Shown here: positions 33,984-52,225 of the stretch, in pieces
How the letters are laid out: each line of letters opens with the position of its first letter
Numbering within the stretch: position 1 is the first letter of the stretch
From: Ramazzottius varieornatus
Lineage: Eukaryota; Animalia; Tardigrada
DNA: 64,000 bases
Direction: 5' to 3'
NCBI GenBank assembly: GCA_001949185.1
Contig: BDGG01000001.1
Span: 5,865,591 to 5,929,590, forward strand
The notes under the pieces: generated by a model
The model's input: the letters and a program-made list of their open reading frames with translations, nothing else
Database searches by the model: none
What the model was told of the DNA's origin: nothing
Translations under genes and position numbers: made by a program

Positions 33984-35007
33984 ATGCCGAGACAAAAGCA
34001 ACTGGCGATAAAGCGCACGGAAGCTGGTGCACAGCGAGCTCGGAAGAATGTTTCTCGTCCTCCCCCACAGCCCTCCAGCCCCAGAAGCTCCCGACGCGAA
34101 CTGAGCCCGGAATACAGCAACATCGAGTCTCCAGCTTCGTCACCCCGTACTCCACCATCCTATGTTTCATCCACCCCTACTCGCATCATTACTCGTGGAG
34201 ATCGCTTCAGAACTGATCTTGTGGCCGATGAGCCTGTCGTCGTCCGACGTCCCAAGCCTGGCACAAAGAAAATCGTCGATGCCGGAAGACGCTCGACTCA
34301 AACCGAGAAGGTTATCCAGAAGAAGCGACAGAAACCTGGCGTGCTGGTCCTGAGGGATATTCGCCGACTGCAGAATACCACACAGTCGCTGATTCCCAGA
34401 GCACCCTTCAGCCGACTCGTCCGAGAAATTGCACTAAAGAGCAGTGTTCATGCTGATCTCCGTTTCCAGCAAGCTGCTCTACAAGCGTTGCAAGTAAGGA
34501 AATTCACACAAGCTGTTCTCAAATCGCATAAAAAAATAACGTAGAAAAATTGCCTGGAAAGGGTTTTGATATACCCTGTGTACTGTAGATCGCACGAAGT
34601 ACACAGTATCCCTGACAAAAAGTTGAGCACATGGTCGGTCTAATTTTGATAATACATATTGACACATTGAGCAGTCCAGGGAAATCTGACACATCAATGA
34701 ATTCAATGTCGAAAAGCACTTTTTTATTTTCAGGAAGCTGCTGAGTTCTACCTGATCTCCATGTTTGAGGATGTGAACTTGTGCGCTGTCCATGGACGCC
34801 GAGTGACTATCATGCCACGCGATATTTCCTTGACGCTGAAGAGTACGCGATGATATGTTTTTTTTCTTTCTGCCGATAGACTTCTGTGCGAAAAAAGTGT
34901 GCTGACAATTTATCTTATCCTCTTTTGCAGTTCGAGGAGATACCCGCTTTCGGTCGTTGCAAGAGCGAGGACTCGTCTCAGTCCCTGCCATTCGAACTCA
35001 ACGTTAA
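33984..35007 (+). CDS. Divergent histone H3 variant, cenH3/CENP-A-like (copy 1); exons 33984-34493, 34734-34842, 34931-35007 (231 aa)
   Basis: Histone fold [49 protein letters not shown]|[36 protein letters not shown]|IRG; canonical GT-AG introns; long S/P/R-rich tail. Confidence 0.88.
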
Positions 35008-35691
35008 ATATTTTTCACCCTACTCCAAGGCCTCCGCAAAGAAAGACTTATCATTACCGCACAAAAAGGCAGCCCGACACGTACTAGAAAGTGGAAGAAA
35101 CAAATAGCCTGACGGTTTTTCGAACATCAACCGGTCAAATAAAATTGGAAATCATTTCTCTTAGAAAGTAACGTTATAGTGTACTTTCCGTTCTCATCTT
35201 TAGTATTACCACGATGTATATTAGCTAGGAGATTTTACATCTGTGCTTGAGTTTGTCTGCCGTTGTCGTGGCGTTGTTGTCCCATTCGTATAGTCCACAC
35301 CAGATTCGTTATTCATCATCATCAAATTATCATAGCGCGCTGATTTTATCCAGTCCCAATAATTGGCTGAGAAACTGCAAATTGATTTTCGACGTTGCCG
35401 ATATTTCTCCGTTAGAAGCTTGTGGTTTACCATACAAAAGAGTATCGGAAATGCTGTATGCTGTACGTTCTGACAAAACCAAAGTGCTCAAAGCGAATTG
35501 TGAAGGAAGCAAGGCAAGTGAACCCCTCATGTGAAAGAACAAATAACAAAGCAGCATTTGGCATTGAAAAGGTTTAAAACTTTAACGCATTCAAAATTCT
35601 TTCAGTTCAATTAGGGAGGTAGATTCAATCTGTTTTCTGGGGAAAGTGAGGAGATGTATCCTCCTGACGAACAAAACAGCATGGTCGACAT

Positions 35692-36590
35692 TTAAAATCG
35701 AGCAGCTGTTTGTCTTGCACCGACAGTCCGCACGGTTCCTCGCTGATATTTTGGGTTTCCGGGAACTGAAAAAGGGATCTAACAATTTAGAATATAGCAG
35801 AAATAGAACTGTCGATAAGTCGAAGTTTCTCTAATCAATACATACTTCTCACAGTCAGTGTGATGTCCCTCGGCATGATTGTCAGTCTACTTCCATGGTG
35901 TGCACACAAGTTCACGTCTTGAAACATCACCACCATGAAGTGCTCTGCCGCTTCCTGAAAATGTCTCTCATCACAGAATATCAACAACTGTTTCGCTTGT
36001 AAGAAAATACATCGAGGACGACCTACCTGCAGCGCTAGCATGGCTGCAGACTGAAAGCGGATATCGAGTTTCATTTCCCTGCAATCTCTCGAACAATACG
36101 ACTGAAGGGAAGCTTGGGGATGATCATCTCCGACGTGGCTTGCAAGCGACGGATCTCCATCAAGGCGACCACACCCGGCTTACGACGAGTCGTCCCGATG
36201 ATCTTCTTGGTCTGCTCTCATCGGCGGCCTGCTTCCATCCCCAGCGAGCATCTGTTTGAAGCCGATGTCTCAGCTTGAGATGCCATGGACTGCTTGCTTC
36301 TGTCGTTGCAGCGGCTGGAAGCGGTCAGTTCGTCGTGAGATGGTACGGGACGCGGACGATCGAGGAACTTTAGGAGTGGCTTGGGCGGATGGAATGTCCC
36401 TTTCCTCGACAGATTCGGCTTCAGAATGGAGTTGGCCGTTGTACTCCGGGCTGCGGCGGGCTTCTTCAGTCAGGTTCGAAGAAGGTCTTGGGGATGATCG
36501 AGTTGGCGCAGCAACATGCTTTCTGGCAACTTGGGGAGCTTCCACACGACCCAGAGTCTGCTTTCGGGGAGTCTGCTTGGTTCGCGGCAT
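35692..36590 (-). pseudogene. Histone H3 variant pseudogene (copy 2)
   Basis: Starts MPRTKQTPRKQ; fold [29 protein letters not shown] /frameshift/ [17 protein letters not shown]|[36 protein letters not shown]|IPG. It has in-frame TGA stops and frameshifts, and the same intron positions as copies 1 and 3. Confidence 0.85.
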
Positions 36591-38567
36591 TGTAGGTTTG
36601 CTAAAGAGACAGGAATTATGGGTACCACCGTGCCAGTAGCAAGAAGCAAGTAGTAGGGACCAATCTGGATGATTTTCGGAATTTTATACACTATTTTGTC
36701 TTGAAGTGAAGAACCAGAGCCTTTTATGTGAAATAAACTGGCGTCGCAGAGTAGTCTTGCATTGGGCAAGGACTGATGAGACTCATTTCACGGGATCCGG
36801 GTCCAAGCAGGTCTTCGTGGCCTGTTTTCCTTGTGTTGAACTACTGTAGTTCTGTCGCCTTGCAGTTGTTAAATTCAGTTGCTTTGCAGTAAATAGGAAT
36901 AAGGGTTCCGACCCTCTTCGCATTGTTCGACGATTGTCTTTTCCTTTACTCAAAAGCACAAAGAATTCTAACCAGGTCTGCGGAGAAGTGCATGCGGAAG
37001 GCTGAACGACAACGACAAGCTTGCCTACGGTACTTTGGGTGGCGCCACCACCGTGAGGAACTGCGAATATGTTTTTCTGACGGTGTAAATTTATTGTGGC
37101 ATCATTATCGAGTATTCGTAAAAAGACGCTTTCAGCCCGGAACAGTGCAATAGTTTCTTTCATCGTGAGTATGCGGAACGTTACGAGCACAACGAACTTA
37201 GTGAGCCATCAAGAAGACCATCTTCTGTAGGCCAGACGTGTCGCCCCTTCATCACCGAAAACGTCTGTGTAAAGTGAGCCAAATCTGTTGACAGTTATTT
37301 GTCCGAGACACAGCGTCCACTAGGGAAACACAAGGCGAAAATATTTTATCGCCGCGTCTACTTTCCAGGTGTTTTTCATTCCGCCATCTGTCGGTCGAAG
37401 AAGTGATTACGGTAGCCACTGACAAAGTCAACTCATTTGCGGCTACAACACATGCTGTTAATAGACAAACCACACAAGACCGCACAGTGGGGCTCACAGG
37501 TGACTTTTGCATATTAGAGTTGGCGTGGAGACTCTGCTTACGAGCAGATCAGTGAATCTGCACACCACACGCTCGTGTCTGCAAGCTTCAAATACTGCTC
37601 GATGGCAGTCAATGCTTGCCGAACGTTCAGTGGCTGAGACAGGGCTTTCCGAAGTCTATCGGCAAGAGAGAATGCTGCCGTAATCTCTTTTGGTAGTTTA
37701 GCATCACGTGCATGTTATCCGTTTTTATAGGCCATTAAGCCAGCAAGATGTTATTAAAAATGCTAGCCTGCATTCCGCATTGGCACGTAGTACAAACCAA
37801 GCAAGTTGGCCTCATTTGAAACAGCGTTCGCAACTACAGTGTACTGTGCTCGTTCTCATGATGGTAGCTTGGTTCTGATCGGATTGGTCAAAAAGTCCCT
37901 CTTAGCTCCGCCTTCTAATCGACCCTGCTAACCAAGTAGCGGAAGAACTGCGGTACGCATCGTCCACTTGGCTTCCTCGTCGCATTCGTTCGATCATAAA
38001 ACTGCGTTGGATTACCATAGCAATCCACAATCGATCGATTAGCTGTATATATCGAAGCGTCGCCTTCGCTGCCTCAGCATCACACTCCGCTGATTACGGC
38101 GTTTTGCTGCTCCATCCGATTATGTGGTCTGCTGGCCCAGTTGCAGAAACTCAACACTGCAGCGACGCTCTATATCTTCTTGTCCCGTCTTCATTGCATA
38201 AAAGCTTGCAATCCATCCGCGCATGGCTCTGCTACGGTAGCAGATGCGTTCCAACGTCCCTCAGCATACCTGACTCGAACCTTTGTTCCTCCGTGGCAGA
38301 AACGAATACGCAAGCACAAAGCACGAACGCACACAAAGCGTATGACAGCAATTCGAGCATTCGTTTGCTTTATCGATTTGACCTGTTTTCTCTGCTCTTT
38401 CCCAGTAAAGCTGCGTCAGCCTGCATTATCGTCATTATCCATCCGGAGCTCCTTATTAGTTGTCCGCACTCACAGTCAGGATGTTCCACAGCTCAGAGAA
38501 GATCAAAGTCGGTATCGGCTTTCTTCCATCATGTAGACTACGATACAATCGACACTTGACAGACATC

Positions 38568-41500
38568 ATGCCGCGGCAGAAGCAGCGGGCACTTAAAAGC
38601 AGGGATGAGCAGTTTCGGAGCGGCGTAGCGGTTGGTGGTCGCTATCCGCTTCGCTTTGTAGCGAAACTAGCGAACGGAGCTCTGGCCAAAACTGGACGTG
38701 GCGAAGCGGGATCCGTAGAAAACTACGAAAGCGGAAAAACGACCAAAGCGGAGCGGAAAGCCGAATTCCGCTATGGTAAATGTAAAAAGTCACAGTTTTT
38801 TCAGAGTTGAACGAGTGATTATCGTTCCAAATGCATATAGTTCTTAGAGGACAACCACCCACGTAAACCTTCGAGTGAGAGATGACTAAGCGATTGCAAA
38901 ATCAAGCACACCATACGGCACAAGTTGTCGCAAGAGGGCGACTAATCTCTTAACTTTAGTTGTCTAACGCATCTTCTGATAAAATCTTGACTTTCGCTCT
39001 TCCATGAAAACTTGTACAATCGGCTGTGCGAAGTGTACAAGAGGTTTGGTTGATTTTCGAGAGAACTGCTGAAGGATGGCCGCTACGGAGATTTTCATCG
39101 ACGAAGATGACGATGTGGAAGCGTCGGAAGCATCGAGTGGAGACCGCGACCGGAAGGCGAAAGAATTCTACTCCACCTTTTTCACGTCGTTAGCTACCGC
39201 CAGAGAATCGAAGAACAGCAAGAGCTACGTAGTTCATTCCGGGAACTGTCGTCTGTGCCCGAAGGAAAAGAAGATTGAGAAGAAGATATCATCCCGGGAC
39301 GGCTGCAGTAACTTCAAAAGCCATGTGTTGACTTTCCACAACAAAAACCAGGTAATGATCCCCTCTCCGGAACTTTAACAGCCATCATATTTACCCGGAT
39401 AGCTGGGATTGAATTCCCGTAAGCTTGTTTTCAATTTTATTGCTGGTACTAGGAGGTGGTGACGTTCTGTGCATCGTCGGAAGAAGCGAAACGAAAAGCG
39501 GACAATGGTACGCTCGTCGATTACTTTCCTTCGGCGAAGAAGAGGCGACTTGGACGGAAGCATCCCAAGTAGATTCGTCTGGACGAAGCCGTAGCTCTTG
39601 TCCAGGTGCAAACTCTGATCGCGCCGTCCGTGCCCGTCACTCGTTCTTTAATAAAGCTATCAAAGTTGCAGACAGTAGTTTAGAGGTAAAGCCTATCATT
39701 TTCCATATGGGCGCATGACGTCATATCGGGACAGCTGTTTCGTACTTTGTAGTGGCCGAAGAGGCACCGAGTCGTCAAAACGCTTCTACATGCGCAGTAC
39801 GTCAATATCAAAGCTGCGCTAGTCAGACTGTTGGACAAAGCGGACGCAGTGGCGATTAACATCGACATTTGGAGCAGTGAACGTCAGCGTGGGTACCTCG
39901 GCATCAGTGTCCATTTCATCGACGAGAAGTTCCGCTTTCGCAATTTCCTTCTCGCCTGTTCTCGCTTCAAAGGCTCACACACAGCTGAAGCGATACTCAA
40001 CTCGACAGTGGAGGTGATTGCGGATTACGGTCAGCAAAGGAAGATCTTCTACGTGGGTACGGACAATGGAAGCAATATCATTTGCGCATTCAAAGACTGG
40101 TTTCCGCAGTTCTATGGATTCAACAGCCCTGCCGATAGCTCAGGTACCGCTATGTAAAATTTCCTACAGTTTAGTCACTTGTCTGACTGGAAAAGTATCT
40201 TGCATTTACTCGCGGTTTGTTGCAGACGATGACTCACTTCAACAAGAAAGCCATCAGGAAAATATTCAAGAACTCGAAGATGCGGCTGCCGATGACGAAG
40301 AGTTCGGTCCCGTCGATCCTGAGGAACTCGACGTGGACAACAACTTGGCTAATGAAGTAGCAGAACTTCTCCTCCAAAAATATTGTTTACTTCCCGAAAG
40401 AAAAATTCTGGTGCGACACTTTTTCCGAGCTTCACGAAACTTTTCAAATATTTCTGCTCGGTTGGGTTACCATTTGTATTATTTGGTTTTCTCGTAGGTT
40501 CGATGTGTGGCACATTCACTCCAGCTAGTGGTCAAAAAGCCCGTGAAAAAGTGTGCAGTGGTCAACAAAGCGGTAGAAGCGCTGGCGTCAGTTGTTTCGA
40601 GCATTCGGCATTCCGTGAGCATGACAGAAGCTGTGGAGAAAGAGTTCGGACGAGCCTTAAAAGCGCGTTGTGCCACTCGCTGGAACAGCAACTTCATCAT
40701 GGCCGAGCACGCGTTGCAGATGGACTGGGACAAAGCGGGTCTTGAGAAGAAGTACCGTCTTTCTCCTGATTACGAAATCATTTTGAAAAAGTTCGTTAAA
40801 ACAACTGCGCCGTTTCAAACGGCCTTTCTGGGATTGCAACGTGATAGCATACCGGCCATCTGTCAGGTATTGCCTATTTTGTACGGTCTTCGGGTGCATT
40901 TGCACAATTTAGTGGCTGCTGGAGAGTACCCGTTGCTGGAAGCCTTCACCTTGGAGCTACTTGGACTTCTCGAAGAACGGTTCGACAAACTGGAGGAAGA
41001 TGACTTGTACTTGGCGGCTTCGTTTTTAGATCCCTCTTTCAAGCTACTTTTTTGCAGAGGATCAAAGAGAGCTGTCGAAACTGAAAAAAGAACCCGGGAC
41101 ATCATTCTGCGTATGATGCGAGAAGTGAAGTTAGCAGGACCTTGCGATACCACTCCTCTCGCAAGCAGTAGCAGAAGGTATGCTTTGATTTTCAAATATC
41201 AAAAAAATAAATAAATATATCACTACGAGACAATACCGAAATTTGCGTATATTCACTAGGCTGGTTTGTTCTTTCAGTGCGTCGAAGAAAGCTGAAGGAG
41301 CATCGGAATTGTTCAGCTTTATGGAAGACGAAGTCCCTCTGGCCAAGACTAAGCAAGGTCGGTTGAAGCAGAATATGAGCTCTATCTGAACAACGACTGG
41401 AGCGGCGAGAACCCTTTGAACTTCTACCGCATGAAAGGATATTTTCAAGAGGATGTGTGTGATAGCTATTTTATGTGCGCCAATTTTATGTGCGCCTGCG

Positions 41501-41950
41501 ACTACCGCTGGTATCGAGCGAATTTTCAGAATTTCGGGAAGAATTCTTAATGAGATTAGACTTCGTACCAATGGTCTGAATTTCGAGAGACTATTATTTT
41601 GTAATGTCAATCAAGACCTTCTTGATCTAATCGCGGAGAGCAAGCCTGCTGCAAAATGTTTCCAGTAAAAATTAATATTTTCAAAAATATTTCTATAGCG
41701 GTCCATAGCGGAAAGCGACCTTCGAAAATTCATAGCAAAACTAAAGTGGGAAGTAAGATCGAAGCAAAGCGGTAGCGAAGCGAAATGTTCCGGTTCTCGT
41801 AACTGCTTATCCCTGTTTAAAAGTACCAAGCCCAAGCTGACTGGCAGAAAGCAGAGTAGGCGTCGTCGGTAGCGCCCCGTTGTTCAGGTCAAAACTCCCA
41901 CGATCGCCAGTGCAGTCCAGAGTACCGCGGGATCGCTATCGGCCTCTTTA
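38568..41950 (+). pseudogene. Fourth H3-variant N-terminal tail, split by hAT insertion and truncated
   Basis: ATG 38568 gives MPRQKQRALKS (copy 1 is [11 protein letters not shown]). It continues after the element as TKPKLTGRKQSRRRR*, then RVPRDRYRP in another frame (cf. RGDRFR, RTDRFQP). No histone fold was found downstream. Confidence 0.6.
38600..41815 (+). mobile_element. hAT (Ac/ZBED-like) DNA transposon with degenerate transposase
   Basis: 15-bp TIR cagggatgagcagtt / aactgcttatccctg; 8-bp TSD cttaaaag / tttaaaag; AGCG(G) subterminal repeats. BED finger CRLC..SNFKSHVLTFH; motifs IDIWS..GYLGISVHFID, GSHTAEAI, TDNGSN, CVAHSLQL, TRWNS, ASFLDP; dimerisation domain LCAPATTAGIERIF. A frameshift near 41440 and a 15-bp duplication (ILCAP x2) suggest it is inactive. 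Confidence 0.93.
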
Positions 41951-43501
41951 CTTTCTTGTTTTCGCTCCTTTTACTTTCTTGTTTTCGCTCCGGCTCCGCA
42001 CGAGCTGTTTGCCACCAATGGTTAGACAAAGTTTGGAGACTCCGACAACGAAGGTGGGCGACGGTCAGCCCAAATTGAAAGCCTCATCTGCGCGAAACGT
42101 CATAAACCTGGTATTCTGGCTCTCCCAGACTTCCAGCGTCTTCGATGGGCGACCCATTTCCTCTTCCAAATCCCCAGGGTACCGCTGGGTGCTTTGGGAG
42201 ACTGCTGCGAAGATACCTCCCGGCCTTCGCTCCAGTAATTCAGGGTTCCACGCAGTGGATGTGGTCGGATAACGCATTTCAATAAACATAATGCTACGAT
42301 ATAAACGATTTACCAGCAGAAGTTGGACTTTGGGCTGCAGAAAAAAAATGTGGCAAAGATTTTGATCAGCAAATATCCGTCGAAGAACGTCCTGGATCAA
42401 TGCGAGCAGCTGCTGCAACGGCTGCAGCCATGTGGTGTAAGTCTAAACCAGCTATGCAGTTGGAAATGACAGTGGTGGAAAGCACTTCCGACCGAGATGA
42501 ACAGAGTAGCCCAGCGAAAACACCGATAAGCGATGTTACAGCAGCTGAAGAAAAGGGCGTATTCCTGCATGACAAATTTCTCCGCGCGTTCATGTCTTTC
42601 TATCTAATCGGTTCTGAGCATTCGGAGTCACTCTTTTCTGCACGAAGGCAGCAGCTGTTATGTATGTATTCACATTCCACTGTGTGACCGAACTCTATGC
42701 CGACAGCTCAGACTCCAACGTTTCTCCGTCTACGCTTTCTTTCTTGTCGAGAGGCAAGCAGCTTGTTTAGCTTGCCGGAACACCGAGTCCCGCTGCGGAA
42801 GCGCATAATTATTTTACATATCAGCTAACATGGCCGATAACTTTCTCGGTTACTGAAATACAAAGCGCCCTGCTAAACCGAGTAGCCATTCCGCAGTGTA
42901 CTGTGTGAACTAATCTTATATCCATATCCGTCCTATTGGCTCACATAACTACCGAGGAGAATATTTCTGCCACAAATATCAGCTGAAATATTGGCAGGTC
43001 GGAATATACAAAGAAAAGCCCCTAGCAGATCAGCCGTTCTAGCAATCTTGCCTCACATCAACAGCGTCGGCTAACCAATAGATCGTAACACCATAATTTA
43101 ATATCAGTATGATCTGTCTGCTAACGCATTCTAACCCCATTGTAGACCGTAATCCGCCAAAAATATCTCGTTTCTATGTTCGAAAACGCAAACCTTTGCG
43201 CTATCCATGGGCATTGTGTGACGAATATGCCGCGCGGCAGCGCTCTAACACCACGAAGTGAATTTTTGGTGTAGACCAACGTCATTTTCGATATTTTCGC
43301 CGTCGGTAATATTCCTTCTTCTCGTTACAGCTTCATATGGTGATCAATTTAAGTCTTCACCATGACAAGGTGTTTTGGTGCTCCAGGTTGATACCGACCA
43401 ATTTTCAGTGACCGAAAGCACAAAGTTAGTATTTGAAACAATCCTTAAACAACGAAACAGCCACGCACACGGTACATCTGTTACCTGATCGACCTGAGTT
43501 A

Positions 43502-43646
43502 CTGTAAATATTCGCTGCGTCCGCGCAGTACGTCATCGTACAAGTGAAGTACAGCCCCAGTCCAGTTTCACGGATTGCGCAACCTCCTACGGGGGTGCAT
43601 GGCTACGTACGAGTACGTACTGCGCGGATGCAGCGGATATTTACAG
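43502..43646. mobile_element. TA-flanked MITE
   Basis: ta|ctgtaaatattcgctgcgtccgcgcagtacgt ... acgtactgcgcggatgcagcggatatttacag|ta. Confidence 0.85.
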
Positions 43647-43801
43647 TACTTCGTCGGTCGCACTTGGTTGGTGATCGCCGCTGTAGTCAGTAACAGCATG
43701 ATATTATAGTGCTTCGATTTGCTACTACCTGTCGTGAATACTATGGGCAGCTCTTTGCTGTGTCGGTTTCAAATTCGAAGACGAAACGTAAATCCGACCG
43801 A

Positions 43802-45020
43802 CAGTGATGCGCCGTACCCATTTAAGCTATGGAGCGTGAATTTTTACCCCTACCCCTACCCCGGGGGCCCCGCCCGATTCAGAAACTTGGTTTCTGGCCA
43901 TCCTTTAGCGCACTTCAACGGCTCCCACACATCCCAGCGCATTCTGAGTGGTTTAGTTACTTTCAAGCCAGTGCGTGCTAGGCTGTGGCCAAAGCTTTAG
44001 CTTTAGATTCGCGTGCCCTGGCGCGACAACTTGTACTTCGGCATATTTGCGGTAACGTAGCTGACGGCAGTGCAGAATCTCGAGCGAGTTTCAATGCCGA
44101 AATACGGTACTTCAAATTCTGTTAAGGTCGGATTCATAACAGGGAGGGGAGCAATTCTGAATCAGGAAATTTCTGAGCCGCTAGCCAGATCACTTCCTCT
44201 AGAAAGTCTTGACTGATCTTCTCAGCGTAGGTGTCGTTTTGAATGTTTTGATTGAGAGGATTCGCTCTTGTTCATCCCGCTTCCGGGGAAATCCCGGCGC
44301 CAAGACACGCGAATCTAAAGCTAAAGCTTTGGCCACAGTAAGGATGCCCATTCCGCCTGGCTTGCTTCCTGGAACGGAATTCGGAAAGCAATTCTTAATT
44401 TTCCCGTTTTCTTATTTTCCGTTTCCTGAAACGGCTCAACCAGAAACTGGAATTCCAACACGGCAGTTCAGAAGCAAAAAACCAGTCGGTAGCTCGGTTT
44501 AGGCCTGTCTGACAAGCTCAGCAAGATCGTTTCCAAGTGGCGCACGAATCCAGCCAGTTACAATAACAACGTGCACCACTTCGAGATCATTTTTGTCGAG
44601 TGTGTTTGCTGACCTTGCTCTGCTTCTATGTAGTGAGCAAAAGTGACACCAAAACTCGACCGATTGGCGCCAAATTTCGCTGGGCAAAACCAGATTTTGA
44701 TAAGCGGAATTCCGGCCAGATCCTTGTATTCCGATTAGGAGTTCCAGCGTTCCAAATCGATTTCAGCCATAACGGAGCAGAATTCCTATTTTCCAAGCGG
44801 AATTAGGAATGGAACGGAAAACGGAACGGGCATCCTTAGGCAACAGCCTAGCACGCACTGATTTGAAAGTTTCTAAATCATTTTTGGAGTGCGCTGGGAT
44901 GTGAGAGCCGTTGACGTGCGCTGAAGGATGGCGAGAAATCGAGTTTAGTAAATCGGGCGGGCCCCGGGGTAGGGGTAGAAATTCCTGCACCATAGCTTAA
45001 TTGGGTACGGCAAATCGCTA
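43802..45020. mobile_element. Composite non-autonomous hAT element with ~185-bp inverted arms and nested TIR elements
   Basis: Perfect 8-bp TSD ccgaccga (43794-43801, 45021-45028); arms 43802-~43990 and ~44839-45020. Inner inverted-repeat pairs: 43983-44338 (ctgtggccaaagctttagctttagattcgcgtg) and 44341-44836 (ta|aggatgccc...gggcatcct|ta). Confidence 0.82.
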
Positions 45021-46047
45021 CCGACCGAAGTCTGCACATCCCTGGACGAGATTCGTTAGGCACAGAAGACACAGTAAATTTGATAAATCCAATGTACTTC
45101 CGATCTTACTAAAACTCTAAAGTGTAGAGATAGAAAAAGGACAAAGACGGAAGTCACGTGCTCGTGGTGAAAAAAATATCGGCTGGACCAGACATCATGA
45201 GCCATATCTGGCTTCAACCACTGGGAATACGTCTTTCAACTCTTTCTGCAGTTTTACTAAATGTTCTCTGCACACGCATATTATTGCGTAACTCTTCGGC
45301 AATTGAATTCAGAAATCAGAGTGCCACAAACCAGAAAACTCGCGAAGATATGGCCGGCGACCTAAAGCTTGATCACACTTCCGCCAAGTGCCCGCTGGAG
45401 AACAGCCTGCGACTGCTGTATACGTTCGCGCTGGTCTTTGATCACTCTGAATCTATTTCATTTCAGGTGGCAACGAAATCTCCATAAACACAGCCGGTAA
45501 CAGAATAAGTCTACGTGCTGTCTGCAACACTGTACGCAGTGATGGTCACCGGTAACCCATCAGTTGATTGACCTACCAATACCATTCCACGAGCGCCGCA
45601 TACTCTCCTGCTCGTCCCAAAACCAGTGTTGAACAGGTATTAGGTTTTCAGTACTCGGTAAAGTAAAGTATTTTGGCTGCCCTTGCCGTTAAAGTATCGG
45701 TATTTGTGTAAATGCACCGTTATTACCTCCGGTAAAGTACAGATCAAAATGAGTAACTGAAGGTATTGGGAACACCTTATAAATTAAACCGCTTTACTTC
45801 ACAACTGTTACTCAACTAAACTCATTAAACTGCGAAAGTGGAACATACGCTGAATTTCTCGTCAGCTACCGACAGCAGGTGGTAACTAATTATATGATGG
45901 ATAAAGGCGTTAACGAGATACTCGGGCAGTGGCAGTCACGGTATCATCGTGGCCTAAAAAACGATGGTAGCCCAGGTATTGTCACTAAGTGGTATTCGAG
46001 CACATAGCGGTCGCCATCGGTAAACCTGTTACCGGTGGTACCCTCAA

Positions 46048-46330
46048 CCAGAGTGAAACAATACTGCCTCTAGTGTGTTCACTGCAGTACAGGCCTCTGT
46101 ACGGGCTCGTTGATACACCGGAGAAGTCCAATCCCACAATCGAGCGTAGAAAGACCAGACAGGGAGGAATTTTCCTGTTGATCGTGAGTTAGCCCTTGAT
46201 TGACTAGGGAGGCATTTTGTAACTTCAGTTCCGCCGTTGATGCTGGACATCATTGATTGACTGTGAAATGTGTATCAACGCGCACTTTTAATGCAGTGAA
46301 CACACTAGAGGCAGTATTGTTTCACTCTGG
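46048..46330. mobile_element. MITE-like element with perfect 39-bp inverted repeat, abutting an N gap
   Basis: ccagagtgaaacaatactgcctctagtgtgttcactgca and its exact reverse complement ending at 46330. Confidence 0.65.
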
Positions 46331-47128
46331 NNNNNNNNNNNNNNNNNNNNNNNNNNNNNNNNNNNNNNNNNNNNNNNNNNNNNNNNNNNNNNNNNNNNNN
46401 NNNNNNNNNNNNNNNNNNNNNNNNNNNNNNNNNNNNNNNNNNNNNNNNNNNNNNNNNNNNNNNNNNNNNNNNNNNNNNNNNNNNNNNNNNNNNNNNNNNN
46501 NNNNNNNNNNNNNNNNNNNNNNNNNNNNNNNNNNNNNNNNNNNNNNNNNNNNNNNNNNNNNNNNNNNNNNNNNNNNNNNNNNNNNNNNNNNNNNNNNNNN
46601 NNNNNNNNNNNNNNNNNNNNNNNNNNNNNNNNNNNNNNNNNNNNNNNNNNNNNNNNNNNNNNNNNNNNNNNNNNNNNNNNNNNNNNNNNNNNNNNNNNNN
46701 NNNNNNNNNNNNNNNNNNNNNNNNNNNNNNNNNNNNNNNNNNNNNNNNNNNNNNNNNNNNNNNNNNNNNNNNNNNNNNNNNNNNNNNNNNNNNNNNNNNN
46801 NNNNNNNNNNNNNNNNNNNNNNNNNNNNNNNNNNNNNNNNNNNNNNNNNNNNNNNNNNNNNNNNNNNNNNNNNNNNNNNNNNNNNNNNNNNNNNNNNNNN
46901 NNNNNNNNNNNNNNNNNNNNNNNNNNNNNNNNNNNNNNNNNNNNNNNNNNNNNNNNNNNNNNNNNNNNNNNNNNNNNNNNNNNNNNNNNNNNNNNNNNNN
47001 NNNNNNNNNNNNNNNNNNNNNNNNNNNNNNNNNNNNNNNNNNNNNNNNNNNNNNNNNNNNNNNNNNNNNNNNNNNNNNNNNNNNNNNNNNNNNNNNNNNN
47101 NNNNNNNNNNNNNNNNNNNNNNNNNNNN
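46331..47128. other. Assembly gap (others at 5236-5285 and 29941-29990)
   Basis: Run of N. Confidence 1.
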
Positions 47129-48401
47129 GAGAGCCAGCGAGGCTAAACTGATAACATCTGATCACACTGGGCAGCGACGACTCATCACGTGGTTCAGTGC
47201 GCGATAATTTGGTAGCACTACAGTAGTTTATAACAGTATCTTGTAGATCGAACTCCGTTCTAGCGTAACATCTTTTTTCTTCTCGAGAGCGTCTCTCAAA
47301 GAGAGTAAATGAACAATCCGCAGTCTCGAAGCGAAAGAGGCAAACAGCTGATCGGCTGATGGGCAGTTGGACACTGTCCGTGACAATTTTTTACGGTTAA
47401 GTTTCACTGCGTTACGTCATATGCACGATTTCCATTTCTGGCTCACATACAGGATGATAATTTGCCGTTCTTTCCGCTTGTCCAATAATTCTTACTGTCC
47501 CATAACAACCCGTCATACGTGTAGTAATTATCACAGCTGCCGCATGAGTTGTGACATTGGGATTTTGCGCACCGTTAGGCGGCAAGGCGAACATAAAAAT
47601 GAAGCGTTCGTGCGCCAGGCAAGAAGTCACGTGAGAGTTTCGCAAAAGTGCACGGGGATCGCAGCATCGCGAAAGTTGGATAACGATAACTTTACGCGGG
47701 TAGAACGCCATTGGTTGCAAAATACGACTGGCGACCCGCCTTCTTGATCGGTGGTCGGCACTTCTATTTGCGAAGAAAAATACGCGATTTGTAGCGGGTT
47801 TTGCACACAGTATCCGCCCCACAACGAGAGTACAATTTTTAACTAGCTGATTCTCAAATCAGACGCGCCTTCTGCAGTTTTCTATTCGTTATTAAGTACT
47901 CGTGCAACCAGCAGTAACGCCACGATATGCAGCTTGAAAACAGCACAATACTCCACGCGGCAGCAGCTTTAAGACGCCTTCCAGCATTTCCGCTGACAGC
48001 ATGCGCTATCGCTCAGTTTGCTATTGGTCGAAAAGTCTCTGCAAGCCTGTCCTCTGATGTACATGACTCATGCTGGCTAACAGTCAGCAGGTTAAAAAGT
48101 CGACCTGATCACAGCACCCAGCAACGGTGAGCACCGAGCCGCTGTCGTCCGTGCTATAAAATCAACCAGGCTATGAGTCATCTACAATACAGTGTCGGAG
48201 AACCACGTTCGCCTTCGACGAGGCTCTGCGTGGCAGGCTTATCACTTCGTCCACACAACACGAACAAAGCACTTCGTTCTCTTTTGTCGACCCATCGGGA
48301 ACCTTCATTTTGTGCCGGCTGATAATTCCATTTAGTACGGACTAAAGGTCAGCCAACAGCCGCTGTTTCGCTACCCGTCACTGGGTGCCAGTCAGAAAAG
48401 G

Positions 48402-48438
48402 TATAAAAGCCCGCATGAGTGAAATTTCTCGCTCAGTC
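48402..48438 (+). promoter_or_regulatory. TATA box plus Inr core promoter of H3 variant copy 3
   Basis: TATAAAAG at 48402 and TCAGTC at 48433 (~31-nt spacing), ~200 bp upstream of the ATG. Confidence 0.55.
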
Positions 48439-48632
48439 GCTCTGCATATTTCCGTACACGTGTTTTCCACTTCACATCGATTTCCGCTCAAGTTCAAAAA
48501 TTTCCCTACACGTGTACGCACTTACCAGACGCTTGCATAATTTTTCCCTGATTGTCCAAGGTGTTCTCCACACGCCTAAATTTCTCGTTTGATTTTCCGT
48601 CATCGATCCAAGAGTAGAAAAAATTTTGTACA

Positions 48633-49849
48633 ATGGCCAGAACCAAGCAAACCGGCTCGATCCACCGTTGTCAGTTGGCTCCCAAGTCGGTCACCAGCCC
48701 TCGTCGCATCTCTCCCATTCCCACCACATCCCGACACCGAACTCCGTCGCCGGAATATGGAGCTGAATCCCGACGATCCACCCGAAGTCACGTCGTTCCT
48801 CTGGCTGAACGCTTCGCCACCAAGATCAACCCGAGGCCCAAATTTTCCCAAGCTATCCGTCGTCCGGATCCCGGACCGTCCCAAGAGTCCTTGGACGGTG
48901 GTCGTCCCGCAGGCCAGACCGAGAAGGCCAAGAGGAAGAAGAAGCGAGCAATGCCAGGAATTCTGGCCTTGAAGGAGATTCGGAAGTTCCAGGGAACTTC
49001 CGAGCTCCTCATCCTCAAAGCTCCGTTCAGCCGCCTCGTCCGGGAAGTCGCACAGAGGTTCATGCCTGACGTGAGACTCCAGTCTTCCGCCATTGCAGCT
49101 CTCCAGGTATGTCTTCTTTCTGCAAAAGCATACAGCCACTTCAGATATCTTCCTTGATTATCTTGAAATACTCTCTCAAAGGAAGTTCTACCCAAAAAAA
49201 ACGTACTATGTTCTCACCTGTTTTGCTGATTCGTCTGATCAGAAGTTGTGACGTGGTGGATGAATCCTTCGATACAGAAACGATACTTCCAACGGCTGTC
49301 GCAGTTTTCGCGATATCAATGGGAAAGAATATCCGGTGTTTTTCTTATGCGTGTTGAGAAACTCGAGATAATCCAGCACCGAACACAAACCTTGATGTCG
49401 GTTTCCTTTGAGCAAAGTTTGAGCTTCTGAACGATATCAGCTGAAGAGCGTTTTTTGTTCAAGTACACTTCCGCTCGCTTGCCTGTCCACTGTACCACAT
49501 CTTGCAGTGTCTTTGCCATGACCAAACAACTGATTATCAGTTTCGTCTTTTCTTTTTCGCAGGAGGCTACCGAATATTACGCAGTTAACATCTTCGAGGA
49601 TGTTAATCTGTGCGCCATTCACGGCAGGCGAGCGACCATCATGCCGAGAGACTTGACTCTGGCTCTTCGACGTAAGCTCCACAATTATTTCCTCTTCCTT
49701 CCTGATCATTTCCGCAGGACATTTATCGAAATGTTTATTGAAAACTCTTTCCTGTTTTAGTGCGGGGAGAGAAGGTTCCTGCCCAACGCCTAGCTTCTCG
49801 TCCTCAGACAGCTCTGCACCCTGGAGGACTCGGACAACCCCGTCGATAA
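48633..49849 (+). CDS. Divergent histone H3 variant (copy 3); exons 48633-49106, 49563-49671, 49761-49849 (223 aa)
   Basis: Starts MARTKQT; fold [51 protein letters not shown]|[36 protein letters not shown]|LRGE. The frame is open across GT-AG introns. Confidence 0.9.
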
Positions 49850-50494: not shown

Positions 50495-52225
50495 TTAACA
50501 GTAAGGCAGAGTCCCACTGTCAGTACAGCCCAGGCTCTCCGGACGAACGTCCATGTATTGTCCAGCGGGACAAGCCTGAACAGCTCGGCTCGTTCCACTG
50601 AAACACATGCACCAGTAGGGACTACAAGTCCCTAGCCCGAACCAATTATTCCCGGTCCCTGCTCTGCCCACACAGTTCTTCGCACTACACAACGCTACCA
50701 TACTGTCCGGCGCCGGAGGCCAGGCCGTCGGTGGCGGGACACTTCCGCGACTCTTCAGCGGACACCAGGTGCTGTTACCGGCCTTACATGAGCCCGTGGA
50801 CCCATCGAAGTACGTCCCGGCATTACAGTTGAACAAACTGGCGATGTTGGCATTACAGTAACACAGGTAGCGGCTACACGGCCACACTTCGTACAGCTTG
50901 GACATCTTGCCTGTACAGAACGTGGTGTCACACTGATCGTAGCCTGTTGGGTAGGAGCTGTCGCCTGGTGTAGGACTCGGCATCGTCGGCGTGGGAAAAG
51001 TAGGAGACGTTGGGCTAAAGTCGGCGATCGACGGTGGCGTGTCTGGTGTTGGGAACTTGGTGGTAGGTGTTGTTGAGGATTTGGTGGTAGTCGATGGGCT
51101 GGACGGAAGTGTAGAAGTCCTGTTGGAAAGACCGTTGTTTCCACCACAAAGACAGGTAGCTTTGCAGCTGTTCTTGTAGTTGCTGGTGGAGCAAGCGTTG
51201 GCACCGGCCATCAGACTGCCACAGTTGGAGTAAACGTCTGTGTACTGGCAAGGATTATCTGGAAAGAAAGGAGAGCGGGAGAAAACGACATCTTCGCTCA
51301 CTATTAATCTGCAGAGTAAAACCTTACTGCATAGCCTCCCGCCAACGCAGTTGTTCGGACACGCTGAGCATGGCGGGCCTCTCACGTATGGCAGTTGACC
51401 GTTAAAATTACCTCTAGGAGAACAACAATAATGTCCAGCTGAGCTGGTTTTTTTTCTGTAAAACCGGAAAAGACTTTGTCAGTTCGGACAACTTACGCTG
51501 GGCAATAGTTGCAGACGAAGAAATTCATCTTGCCGCCACAGCTCGAGAACCCACATCCGATCTGCCAGGTTTTCGCCCATACAATCTAAGTGAACAAAGA
51601 CTTTACTAACATTATATCCCAAGCGGGAAAGCATTCGAGGCTGCCACACCTGTGTGTAGTGTCCGGCAGTAGAGGAGCAAGTCACCGCGGTCCCGTCCGA
51701 GCACGAAGCCACTTCATTGTACCACATGTCGATGACGGTCTTCCATGACATTGGAGAACCGCCACTGTTCATAGCTATGTTTTGTCCGCACGAAGAAAAC
51801 TCTACGCGACAGAAACAACGTTAAAGGCTGCGATGCTACATATGTATCTTCGACGAGAGCAGATGACCCTTACGGGAAGTACTACGGTTGGTATTGGCGT
51901 TGTGCTGGAAGACGCAGTTGTTGGCATGCTGTTGGGCTCCTTGGGCGGCTTCGGCGTTCCACTGGATGGTCAGCATGTTCGACGCGGACGGACTGACCAA
52001 GGTTCGCAGGCAGTTGTGCTTCTTCACAATGTAGTCCTGGACCTCTTGTACAGAAGTGCTGGCGAAAGACGCGGGAACCGAGTCCATCTTGGAAGACTGG
52101 TTAACCAGTGGGTACGTGCTCAGGTCAGATGCCGAGAATGGGGAACTCGCCGGGGCACAAAACTGTTGCGCGATAACATAGCGAACACCTGCGAGCTGAA
52201 AAGCTGCAAGCAAAATCGTTGCCAT
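50495..52225 (-). CDS. Secreted CAP/SCP (CRISP-like) protein with ShK-like domain, S/T/P linker and two Cys-rich (CBM14/peritrophin-like) modules; multi-exon
   Basis: Signal-like N-terminus; CAP motifs HNCLR, ASNMLTIQWN, ANNCVFQH, CGQNIA, WYNE, GHYTQ|IVWAKTWQIGCG, FVCNYCPA|GN; hinge PYVRGPPCSACPNNC; ShK-like CQYTDVYSNC...CKATCLC; modules ending CNAGTYFD...C and CPAGQYMD...C. Confidence 0.87.

Follow-up and report, generated by a model that had tools for sequence, protein, structure and literature searches.

Tardigrade chromatin has been studied for its tolerance of damage, as in the binding of Dsup to nucleosomes, and no tardigrade-specific core histone variant was found described in the literature that we searched. 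The described systems that come closest to the genes treated here are canonical H3 and its replacement form H3.3; the centromeric H3 variants (cenH3/CENP-A), which reportedly have role-sharing paralogues in Drosophila (Cid1-5) and Caenorhabditis (HCP-3/CPAR-1); human H3.Y, a primate-specific, replacement-type H3 with a tail of normal length and no C-terminal extension; and multi-copy, lineage-specific variant families with birth-and-death evolution, such as the Drosophila Cid paralogues and the short H2A variants of mammals. Here, we analyzed a window of 64 kb on contig C1 of Ramazzottius varieornatus (G000:C1:5865591-5929590; the assembly comprises 55.8 Mb in 200 contigs), to which all positions given without a contig refer. 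Four H3-like loci lie within 16 kb of this window, between positions 33984 and 49849. Two of them, A and E, are intact, whereas B and a split copy, C/D, are dead. We believe that these loci probably form a small tandem cluster of long standing, which belongs to a eutardigrade “long-tail H3” family separate from canonical H3 as well as from H3.3 and the tardigrade CENP-A-like histone.

Copies A and E are members of the H3 family: both have an H3-type fold, and the histone domain PF00125 matches exons 1 and 2 of each gene with E-values of 1e-9 to 1e-14. Exon 1 scores 47.6 bits in A (2.5e-12) and 55.1 bits in E (1.1e-14), against a cut-off of 26.4 bits. Copy A is encoded on the forward strand in three exons. 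The first (33984-34493) has 170 codons for a tail of 117 amino acids (aa), alphaN, alpha1, loop 1 and the start of alpha2, and it ends in ..ALQ before a phase-0 GT donor; the second (34734-34842) spans 109 nucleotides (nt), i.e. 36 codons plus 1 nt, and is followed by a phase-1 donor; the third (34931-35007) begins with IRG, continues with 22 aa of C-terminal extension (..RFRSLQERG..) and closes with the stop codon. A possible poly(A) signal, AATAAA, occurs 3' of the gene at 35138. Copy E, on the same strand, opens with MARTKQT in an exon of 158 codons (48633-49106) that includes a 107-aa tail and also closes with ..ALQ and a phase-0 donor. Its exon 2 (49563-49671) is likewise 109 nt long with a phase-1 donor, and its exon 3 (49761-49849) encodes LRG, a 26-aa extension and the stop codon. 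All of the introns in the two genes are bounded by GT/AG, and both reading frames are intact. Further, the three-exon models are identical to the public proteins RvY_02104 (A; GAU89567.1, our P0001, 231 aa) and RvY_02109-1 (E; GAU89573.1, our P0433, 223 aa). When exon 1 of A was used as a query, NCBI returned “hypothetical protein RvY_02104” of R. varieornatus at 100% identity. A public 174-aa isoform of E (P0050) consists of exon 1 continuing into a retained intron 1, and it is truncated there.

The first-pass annotation of this DNA had described a set of four related loci within 16 kb, half of them intact and half dead, with a common gene structure, and our gene models and mapping of lesions bear this description out. 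In A, B and E, a phase-0 intron follows ..LQ, exon 2 measures 109 nt, and a phase-1 intron precedes IRG, IPG or LRG. Not all of these characters are peculiar to the family, however. The phase-0 intron after ..ALQ is also present in the canonical H3 genes of this genome, in H3.3 and in a divergent variant on contig C21; the position of intron 2 is thus the sole family-specific intron character. In H3.3 and the C21 variant, intron 2 follows KDIQ, four codons upstream of its position in the long-tail family. Two more members of the family were located on other contigs, both on the reverse strand. One, F (C6:1781690-1782674; L050), is intact and has an exon 1 of 190 codons with a tail of 137 aa; its exon 2 is 107 nt long with the donor GTTAGT, such that intron 2 is displaced by 2 nt. 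The other, G (C2:6882332-6882968; L057), is dead: stop codons interrupt its tail region, its loop 1 is very long, and its exon 2 is cut short.

The comparison with canonical H3 (C12 and C2) and H3.3 (C15) reveals both kinship and considerable remodeling. The order of the fold elements (alphaN, alpha1, loop 1, alpha2, loop 2, alpha3) is the same, and the folds are about 61-63% identical to H3. All of the top matches among solved structures are to H3, with human H3.Y (5ay8) being the best. In the family alignment, the start of the tail, M(A/P)R(T/Q)KQ, is conserved and is followed by a K9-like site that resembles ARKS. Next to the fold, a segment with the pattern G(R/K)RSxQxEK..KKRxKPG is aligned by HMMER to H3 residues 24-44 and supplies a K27-like context; the tail is therefore alignable to H3 over residues 1-11 and 24-44. 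Between the K9-like and K27-like sites lie variable, S/P/R-rich insertions that carry the motifs (S/T)PE(Y) and RPxPG, and through them the tails are 65-95 aa longer than those of H3 and H3.3. The annotation had already pointed to the length of the tails, and we count 117 aa in A and 107 aa in E before the “PG” of alphaN, as opposed to 43 aa in canonical H3. The tails have an isoelectric point of about 11.5-12 and contain four to six S/T-P sites.

The fold itself also carries a recognizable set of changes. The substitutions listed in the annotation, PFSR, (E/Q)DVNLC, HG(R/S)R and MPRD, are all present, and the invariant fold residues of the family include FEDxN..A.HGRR.T.MP.D. Relative to canonical H3 and H3.3, the family has A114G, K115R and K122R, has lost K56 and K79, and in most members has T107V. 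Most members have also lost Gln68 (PFSR for PFQR in A, B and E), but F retains it in SFQR. The AAIG patch of H3.3 (residues 87-90) is replaced by QAALQ in A and by SAIAA in E. Finally, all examined members except F have a C-terminal extension of about 18-27 aa, which is a feature foreign to canonical H3 and H3.3; that of F is only 9 aa long (..IRIDGRFNYKR). A core of the extension starting with R(F/Y) is conserved in most members, although the extension of E has diverged and aligns poorly.

With human H3.Y, the family shares arginine at positions 115 and 122 and, in copy A, lysine at position 42, and both are lineage-restricted H3s of the replacement type. H3.Y differs in its restriction to primates, its tail of ordinary length and its unextended C-terminus; the likeness is a matter of convergence and not of orthology.

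The family is not confined to R. varieornatus. Hypsibius exemplaris has at least two full-length relatives with the same architecture (OWA50995.1 and OWA52022.1), and Paramacrobiotus metropolitanus has at least four (XP_055343266.1 and XP_055343229.1, on one scaffold, XP_055333307.1 and XP_055340084.1); further full-length relatives are present among Logan and JGI sequences. The Logan relatives P0002, which is 83% identical to A, and P0005 are encoded without interruption on contigs of about 1.1-1.2 kb. We take these contigs to be spliced transcripts, which would mean that related species transcribe such genes and splice them in the same way. “Lineage-specific”, the term applied in the annotation, thus holds in the sense that the family has so far been found only in tardigrades (three eutardigrade genera), but not in the sense of a family specific to R. 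varieornatus. Proteins of the family bear public names such as “hypothetical protein” and “putative histone H3.3-like type 3”, and a literature search by gene and protein accessions, which took in the supplementary files of the tardigrade genome paper from 2017, did not find the genes of the family named.

The annotation called for a phylogeny of the histone fold, and we built one from 29 sequences, 13 of which are members of the family (A, B, E, F, G and eight tardigrade proteins); a second tree was restricted to 91 columns of the fold. The 13 members form one branch, with support of 97/96 when all kept columns are used and 96/96 with the fold only, and this clade stands outside H3, H3.3 and a CENP-A-like clade. 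The latter comprises a gene on contig C3 (L041), the Hypsibius protein P0222, and P0224, and it is separately supported (97/94 and 99/98). A first, broader tree had left E unplaced, and E fell within the family once more tardigrade members were added. Within the family, A pairs with P0002, F pairs with G (in the fold-only tree), and P0006 and P0304 of Paramacrobiotus form a supported pair in both trees; P0432 joins the last pair only in the all-column tree (96/87). The groupings of P0006, P0304 and P0432 point to duplications within lineages.

These duplicates are not young. When the folds of A, E and F are compared, synonymous sites differ in a proportion (pS) of 0.68-0.80, i.e. they are saturated, and nonsynonymous sites in a proportion (pN) of 0.25-0.30; dN/dS is 0.13-0.18 where dS can be computed. 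With dS between paralogues saturated, these values can serve only as an upper bound on dN/dS of about 0.18. The folds of the paralogues have not diverged neutrally, which was a check proposed in the annotation. Saturated synonymous sites combined with a low dN/dS point to old duplicates that were maintained by selection on the fold, rather than to a young array. The description of the family as “fast-evolving” accordingly needs correction, in that the paralogues are ancient, the fold is under purifying selection, and poor conservation is limited to the tails. Identity between A and P0002 is 91% for the fold, 87% for the C-terminal extension and 76% for the tail; between A and E, the fold reaches 58% and the tail 43%. 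Relatives in Hypsibius and Paramacrobiotus number from two to four or more paralogues per genome, and purifying selection has kept the fold of the family while synonymous sites became saturated.

The birth-and-death model proposed in the annotation is supported by these data. Two intact and two dead copies stand side by side in the window, contig C6 holds a further intact copy and C2 a further dead one, and Paramacrobiotus has undergone separate duplications. In their tandem and dispersed paralogues, in the pseudogenes beside intact genes and in the independent duplications in related lineages (here P0006 and P0304), these genes behave like the Drosophila Cid and mammalian short H2A families. 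They differ from them in age, as the long-tail H3 paralogues are old and saturated in dS rather than recent.

An important question regarding this locus is whether its products are centromeric histones, a reading toward which the annotation leaned. The same genome encodes a CENP-A-like H3 variant on the forward strand of contig C3 (C3:3662937-3663311; L041:1066-1629). It is intronless, has PFSR and ends in ..LRHSDFF; its loop 1 is six residues longer than that of H3, MWQ replaces RFQ (placing Trp at the Phe84 position), and its tail cannot be aligned to H3. Its open frame lacks a Met, so an upstream exon is likely. An orthologue of 299 aa exists in Hypsibius exemplaris (OQV21426.1). L041 is the better cenH3 candidate of this genome. 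It is nevertheless conceivable that A, E and their kin are extra cenH3 paralogues that share centromere roles with the C3 gene. Like cenH3, the family has long, poorly conserved tails and a history of gene duplication and loss; copies A, B and E have PFSR and so lack Gln68; A and F have two additional residues in loop 1; and many distant database matches carry the names Cse4 or cenH3. A CENP-A deposition pathway exists in the organism, given its HJURP/Scm3 orthologue (GAU99461.1), which has been modeled with a “CENPA” whose protein identity is unstated (PMC13322267). However, the full cenH3 signature resides in the separate, well-supported clade of L041 and Hypsibius P0222, and the window family falls outside that clade in both trees. 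Its members retain Phe or Leu at the Phe84 position and never have Trp there, loop 1 is not extended in E, P0005, P0006 and P0304, and F keeps Gln68. Further, three parts of the tails can be aligned to H3, namely the N-terminus, the K9-like site and the K27-K37 region. We therefore consider a centromeric role for these paralogues distinctly unlikely, and the tempting cenH3 label is not supported for them.

Two other explanations were weighed. The genes could simply be divergent replacement histones of the H3.3 type, deposited by HIRA or DAXX. They contain introns, are not linked to other core histone genes and, in the case of A, have a possible poly(A) signal, and their relatives have been annotated publicly with H3.3-like names. 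Yet the genome contains a bona fide H3.3 on C15, which carries the AAIG patch where the family has QAALQ or SAIAA, and whose intron 2 lies four codons upstream of theirs. Identity to H3 of only about 61-63% in the fold, and a clade of their own outside both H3 and H3.3, make this explanation quite improbable in our estimation. It could also be that A and E have ceased to function and are transcribed relics bound for the same decay as B and C/D. Two of the four loci in the window are dead, as is the family member on C2, E has no detectable orthologue, and one of its public isoforms is the truncated form that retains intron 1. Against this stand the complete three-exon frames and canonical splice sites of A and E, which have persisted despite synonymous saturation against every paralogue, as well as the constraint on the fold that is evident in the pattern of pN and pS. 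Orthologues have been kept in three genera, and the conservation between A and the relative on a spliced, transcript-like contig extends to both the fold and the C-terminal extension. We thus regard loss of function in A and E as very improbable.

Several observations do weigh against our preferred reading, that of an old and distinct long-tail H3 family. Besides the cenH3-type traits and database names discussed above, neither tree resolves the branching order inside the family, and no orthologue with the tail of E could be detected. The dN/dS values, coming from saturated comparisons of paralogues, speak of past rather than present constraint. The AlphaFold monomer of A has a mean predicted local distance difference test (pLDDT) score of only 54, a low confidence that permits a reading of secondary structure only, with helices predicted at residues 120-131, 142-152, 163-189 and 198-207. 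Lastly, any functional reading of the Lys-to-Arg changes leans on general knowledge of K56, K79, K115 and K122 of H3.

If the locus does represent a long-tail H3 family, a mode of action can be envisioned. Given a fold identity of 61-63%, the proteins would be expected to pair with H4, and they probably enter nucleosomes outside the histone supply that is coupled to S phase. With K115 and K122 changed to Arg and with K56 and K79 lost, the DNA-facing lateral surface would be deprived of acetylation and methylation switches, and a particle that lacks the acetylation switches would be closed more constitutively. The long, basic tail, with its sites of the proline-directed phosphorylation type, and the C-terminal extension might add contacts to DNA or to reader proteins. 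Such particles would presumably serve a specialized chromatin state; the chromatin of the germline or embryo and that of stress (anhydrobiosis) are candidates, neither of which we favor. Copy number would turn over through tandem duplication, divergence and loss. A bolder proposal is that eutardigrades possess a nucleosomal H3 class of their own, which builds specially stable or compact chromatin in the germline, in the embryo or during anhydrobiosis alongside Dsup-type protection, with the paralogues marking different compartments. We offer this proposal tentatively and hold it to be rather unlikely.

Whatever their precise role, these genes represent a conserved, multi-copy class of H3 in which the tail has been rebuilt and a C-terminal extension gained, and two of them are already annotated (RvY_02104 and RvY_02109). 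Public names such as “hypothetical protein” and “putative histone H3.3-like” mask what is a distinct family. The existence of orthologues in a laboratory species, Hypsibius exemplaris, and the contrast with the CENP-A-like gene make the question of their function directly testable.

The dead copies record how members of the family have been lost. Pseudogene B (35692-36590) lies on the reverse strand, convergent with A, with exons at 36590-36027, 35954-35846 (109 nt) and 35765-35692 (beginning IPG..). Two frameshifts and a single in-frame TGA disrupt it, yet every splice site is retained. Copy C/D, on the forward strand, is far more decayed; B, having three lesions as opposed to the many in C/D, died later. 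The 5' end of C/D (38569-38599) contains an ATG, encodes MPRQKQRALK and ends in an 8-bp target-site copy, CTTAAAAG. A 3.2-kb transposon (38600-41815, forward strand) follows, inserted in the tail-coding part of the gene. It meets the criteria for a hAT element: its terminal inverted repeats, CAGGGATGAGCAG and CTGCTTATCCCTG, are 13 bp long with one mismatch; it is flanked by an 8-bp target-site duplication, CTTAAAAG and TTTAAAAG, that matches at 7 of 8 positions; and the hAT dimerisation domain PF05699 is matched at 41453-41665 with 23 bits (cut-off 21.4). A genome-wide DNA search found the stretch from 38600 to about 41818 to be repetitive, with copies that are 94-95% identical elsewhere.

The remainder of C/D extends over 41816-43256 of the forward strand, with the second target-site copy at 41816-41823 and the gene resuming at 41824. 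When the element is removed in silico, the H3-like start of the tail is rejoined and runs into a stop at 41869-41871 in the tail remnant; C/D is therefore a single split gene, and the loci number four. An inverted duplication, which would have linked the open reading frame (ORF) at 38569 to the fold remnant at 42050, was ruled out by the mapped ends of the transposon. This locus had been called both dead and devoid of a histone fold. Dead it is, but decayed remnants of the fold persist, namely a frameshifted alphaN/alpha1 at 42050-42196 and a remnant of exon 2 at 43158-43256 (..MFENANLCAIHGHCVTNMPRG..). Full-length copies of the hAT element, 94-95% identical, are found at C1:7263487-7266720 and C1:5135120-5138321, and several partial copies occur on C3, C4 and C5.

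The absence of H4, H2A and H2B genes near the locus, as the annotation reported, agrees with our search of the entire window, in which all matches to PF00125 are of the H3 type. Without a linked H4, H2A or H2B, the locus is not a replication-dependent histone cluster, a point on which we and the annotation concur. No Rfam histone 3' stem-loop was detected in the window, but this search has no positive control, as none was found within about 1.5 kb of the canonical H3 loci that were scanned either (C12 and C2:7823265-7823723). An intron in canonical H3 genes, along with no 3' stem-loop found, is unusual among the replication-dependent histone genes of animals.

Genome-wide, searches with PF00125 and with the exons of A revealed about 15 H3-type loci. 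Three are canonical H3 genes situated in histone clusters (C12:272772-273230, C2:7598750-7599208 and C2:7823265-7823723), and others, apart from the H3.3, CENP-A-like and long-tail genes, are divergent (C21:293887-294386, C23:80087-81169, C6:2045868-2046366, C3:5165944-5166045 and C16:725600-725961). The C21 variant, of 167 aa, has an N-terminal extension and a loop 1 that is four residues longer; the C23 variant combines a Gly-rich tail with a long loop 1; and the C16 locus is a pseudogene.

An assembly gap of 798 N (46331-47128) occupies intergenic sequence between the C/D pseudogene and E. It begins 3.1 kb past the last remnant of C/D and ends 1.5 kb before the ATG of E. It touches no copy, and no reading frame crosses it; it could hide a further H3 fragment. 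Interspersed repeats are found on either side. To its left (46046-46330) is an element of about 285 bp that resembles a miniature inverted-repeat transposable element; its ends form inverted repeats of about 40 bp, and it has dozens of copies that are 79-90% identical. To its right, repeats are located at 47129-47228 (the first 100 bases, with copies 95-98% identical) and at about 47283-47525. Just downstream of E, on the reverse strand (50495-51385), a Cys-rich ORF of 296 aa has a match to the Crisp domain (PF08562, 1.5e-7) and a weak match to the chitin-binding domain CBM_14.

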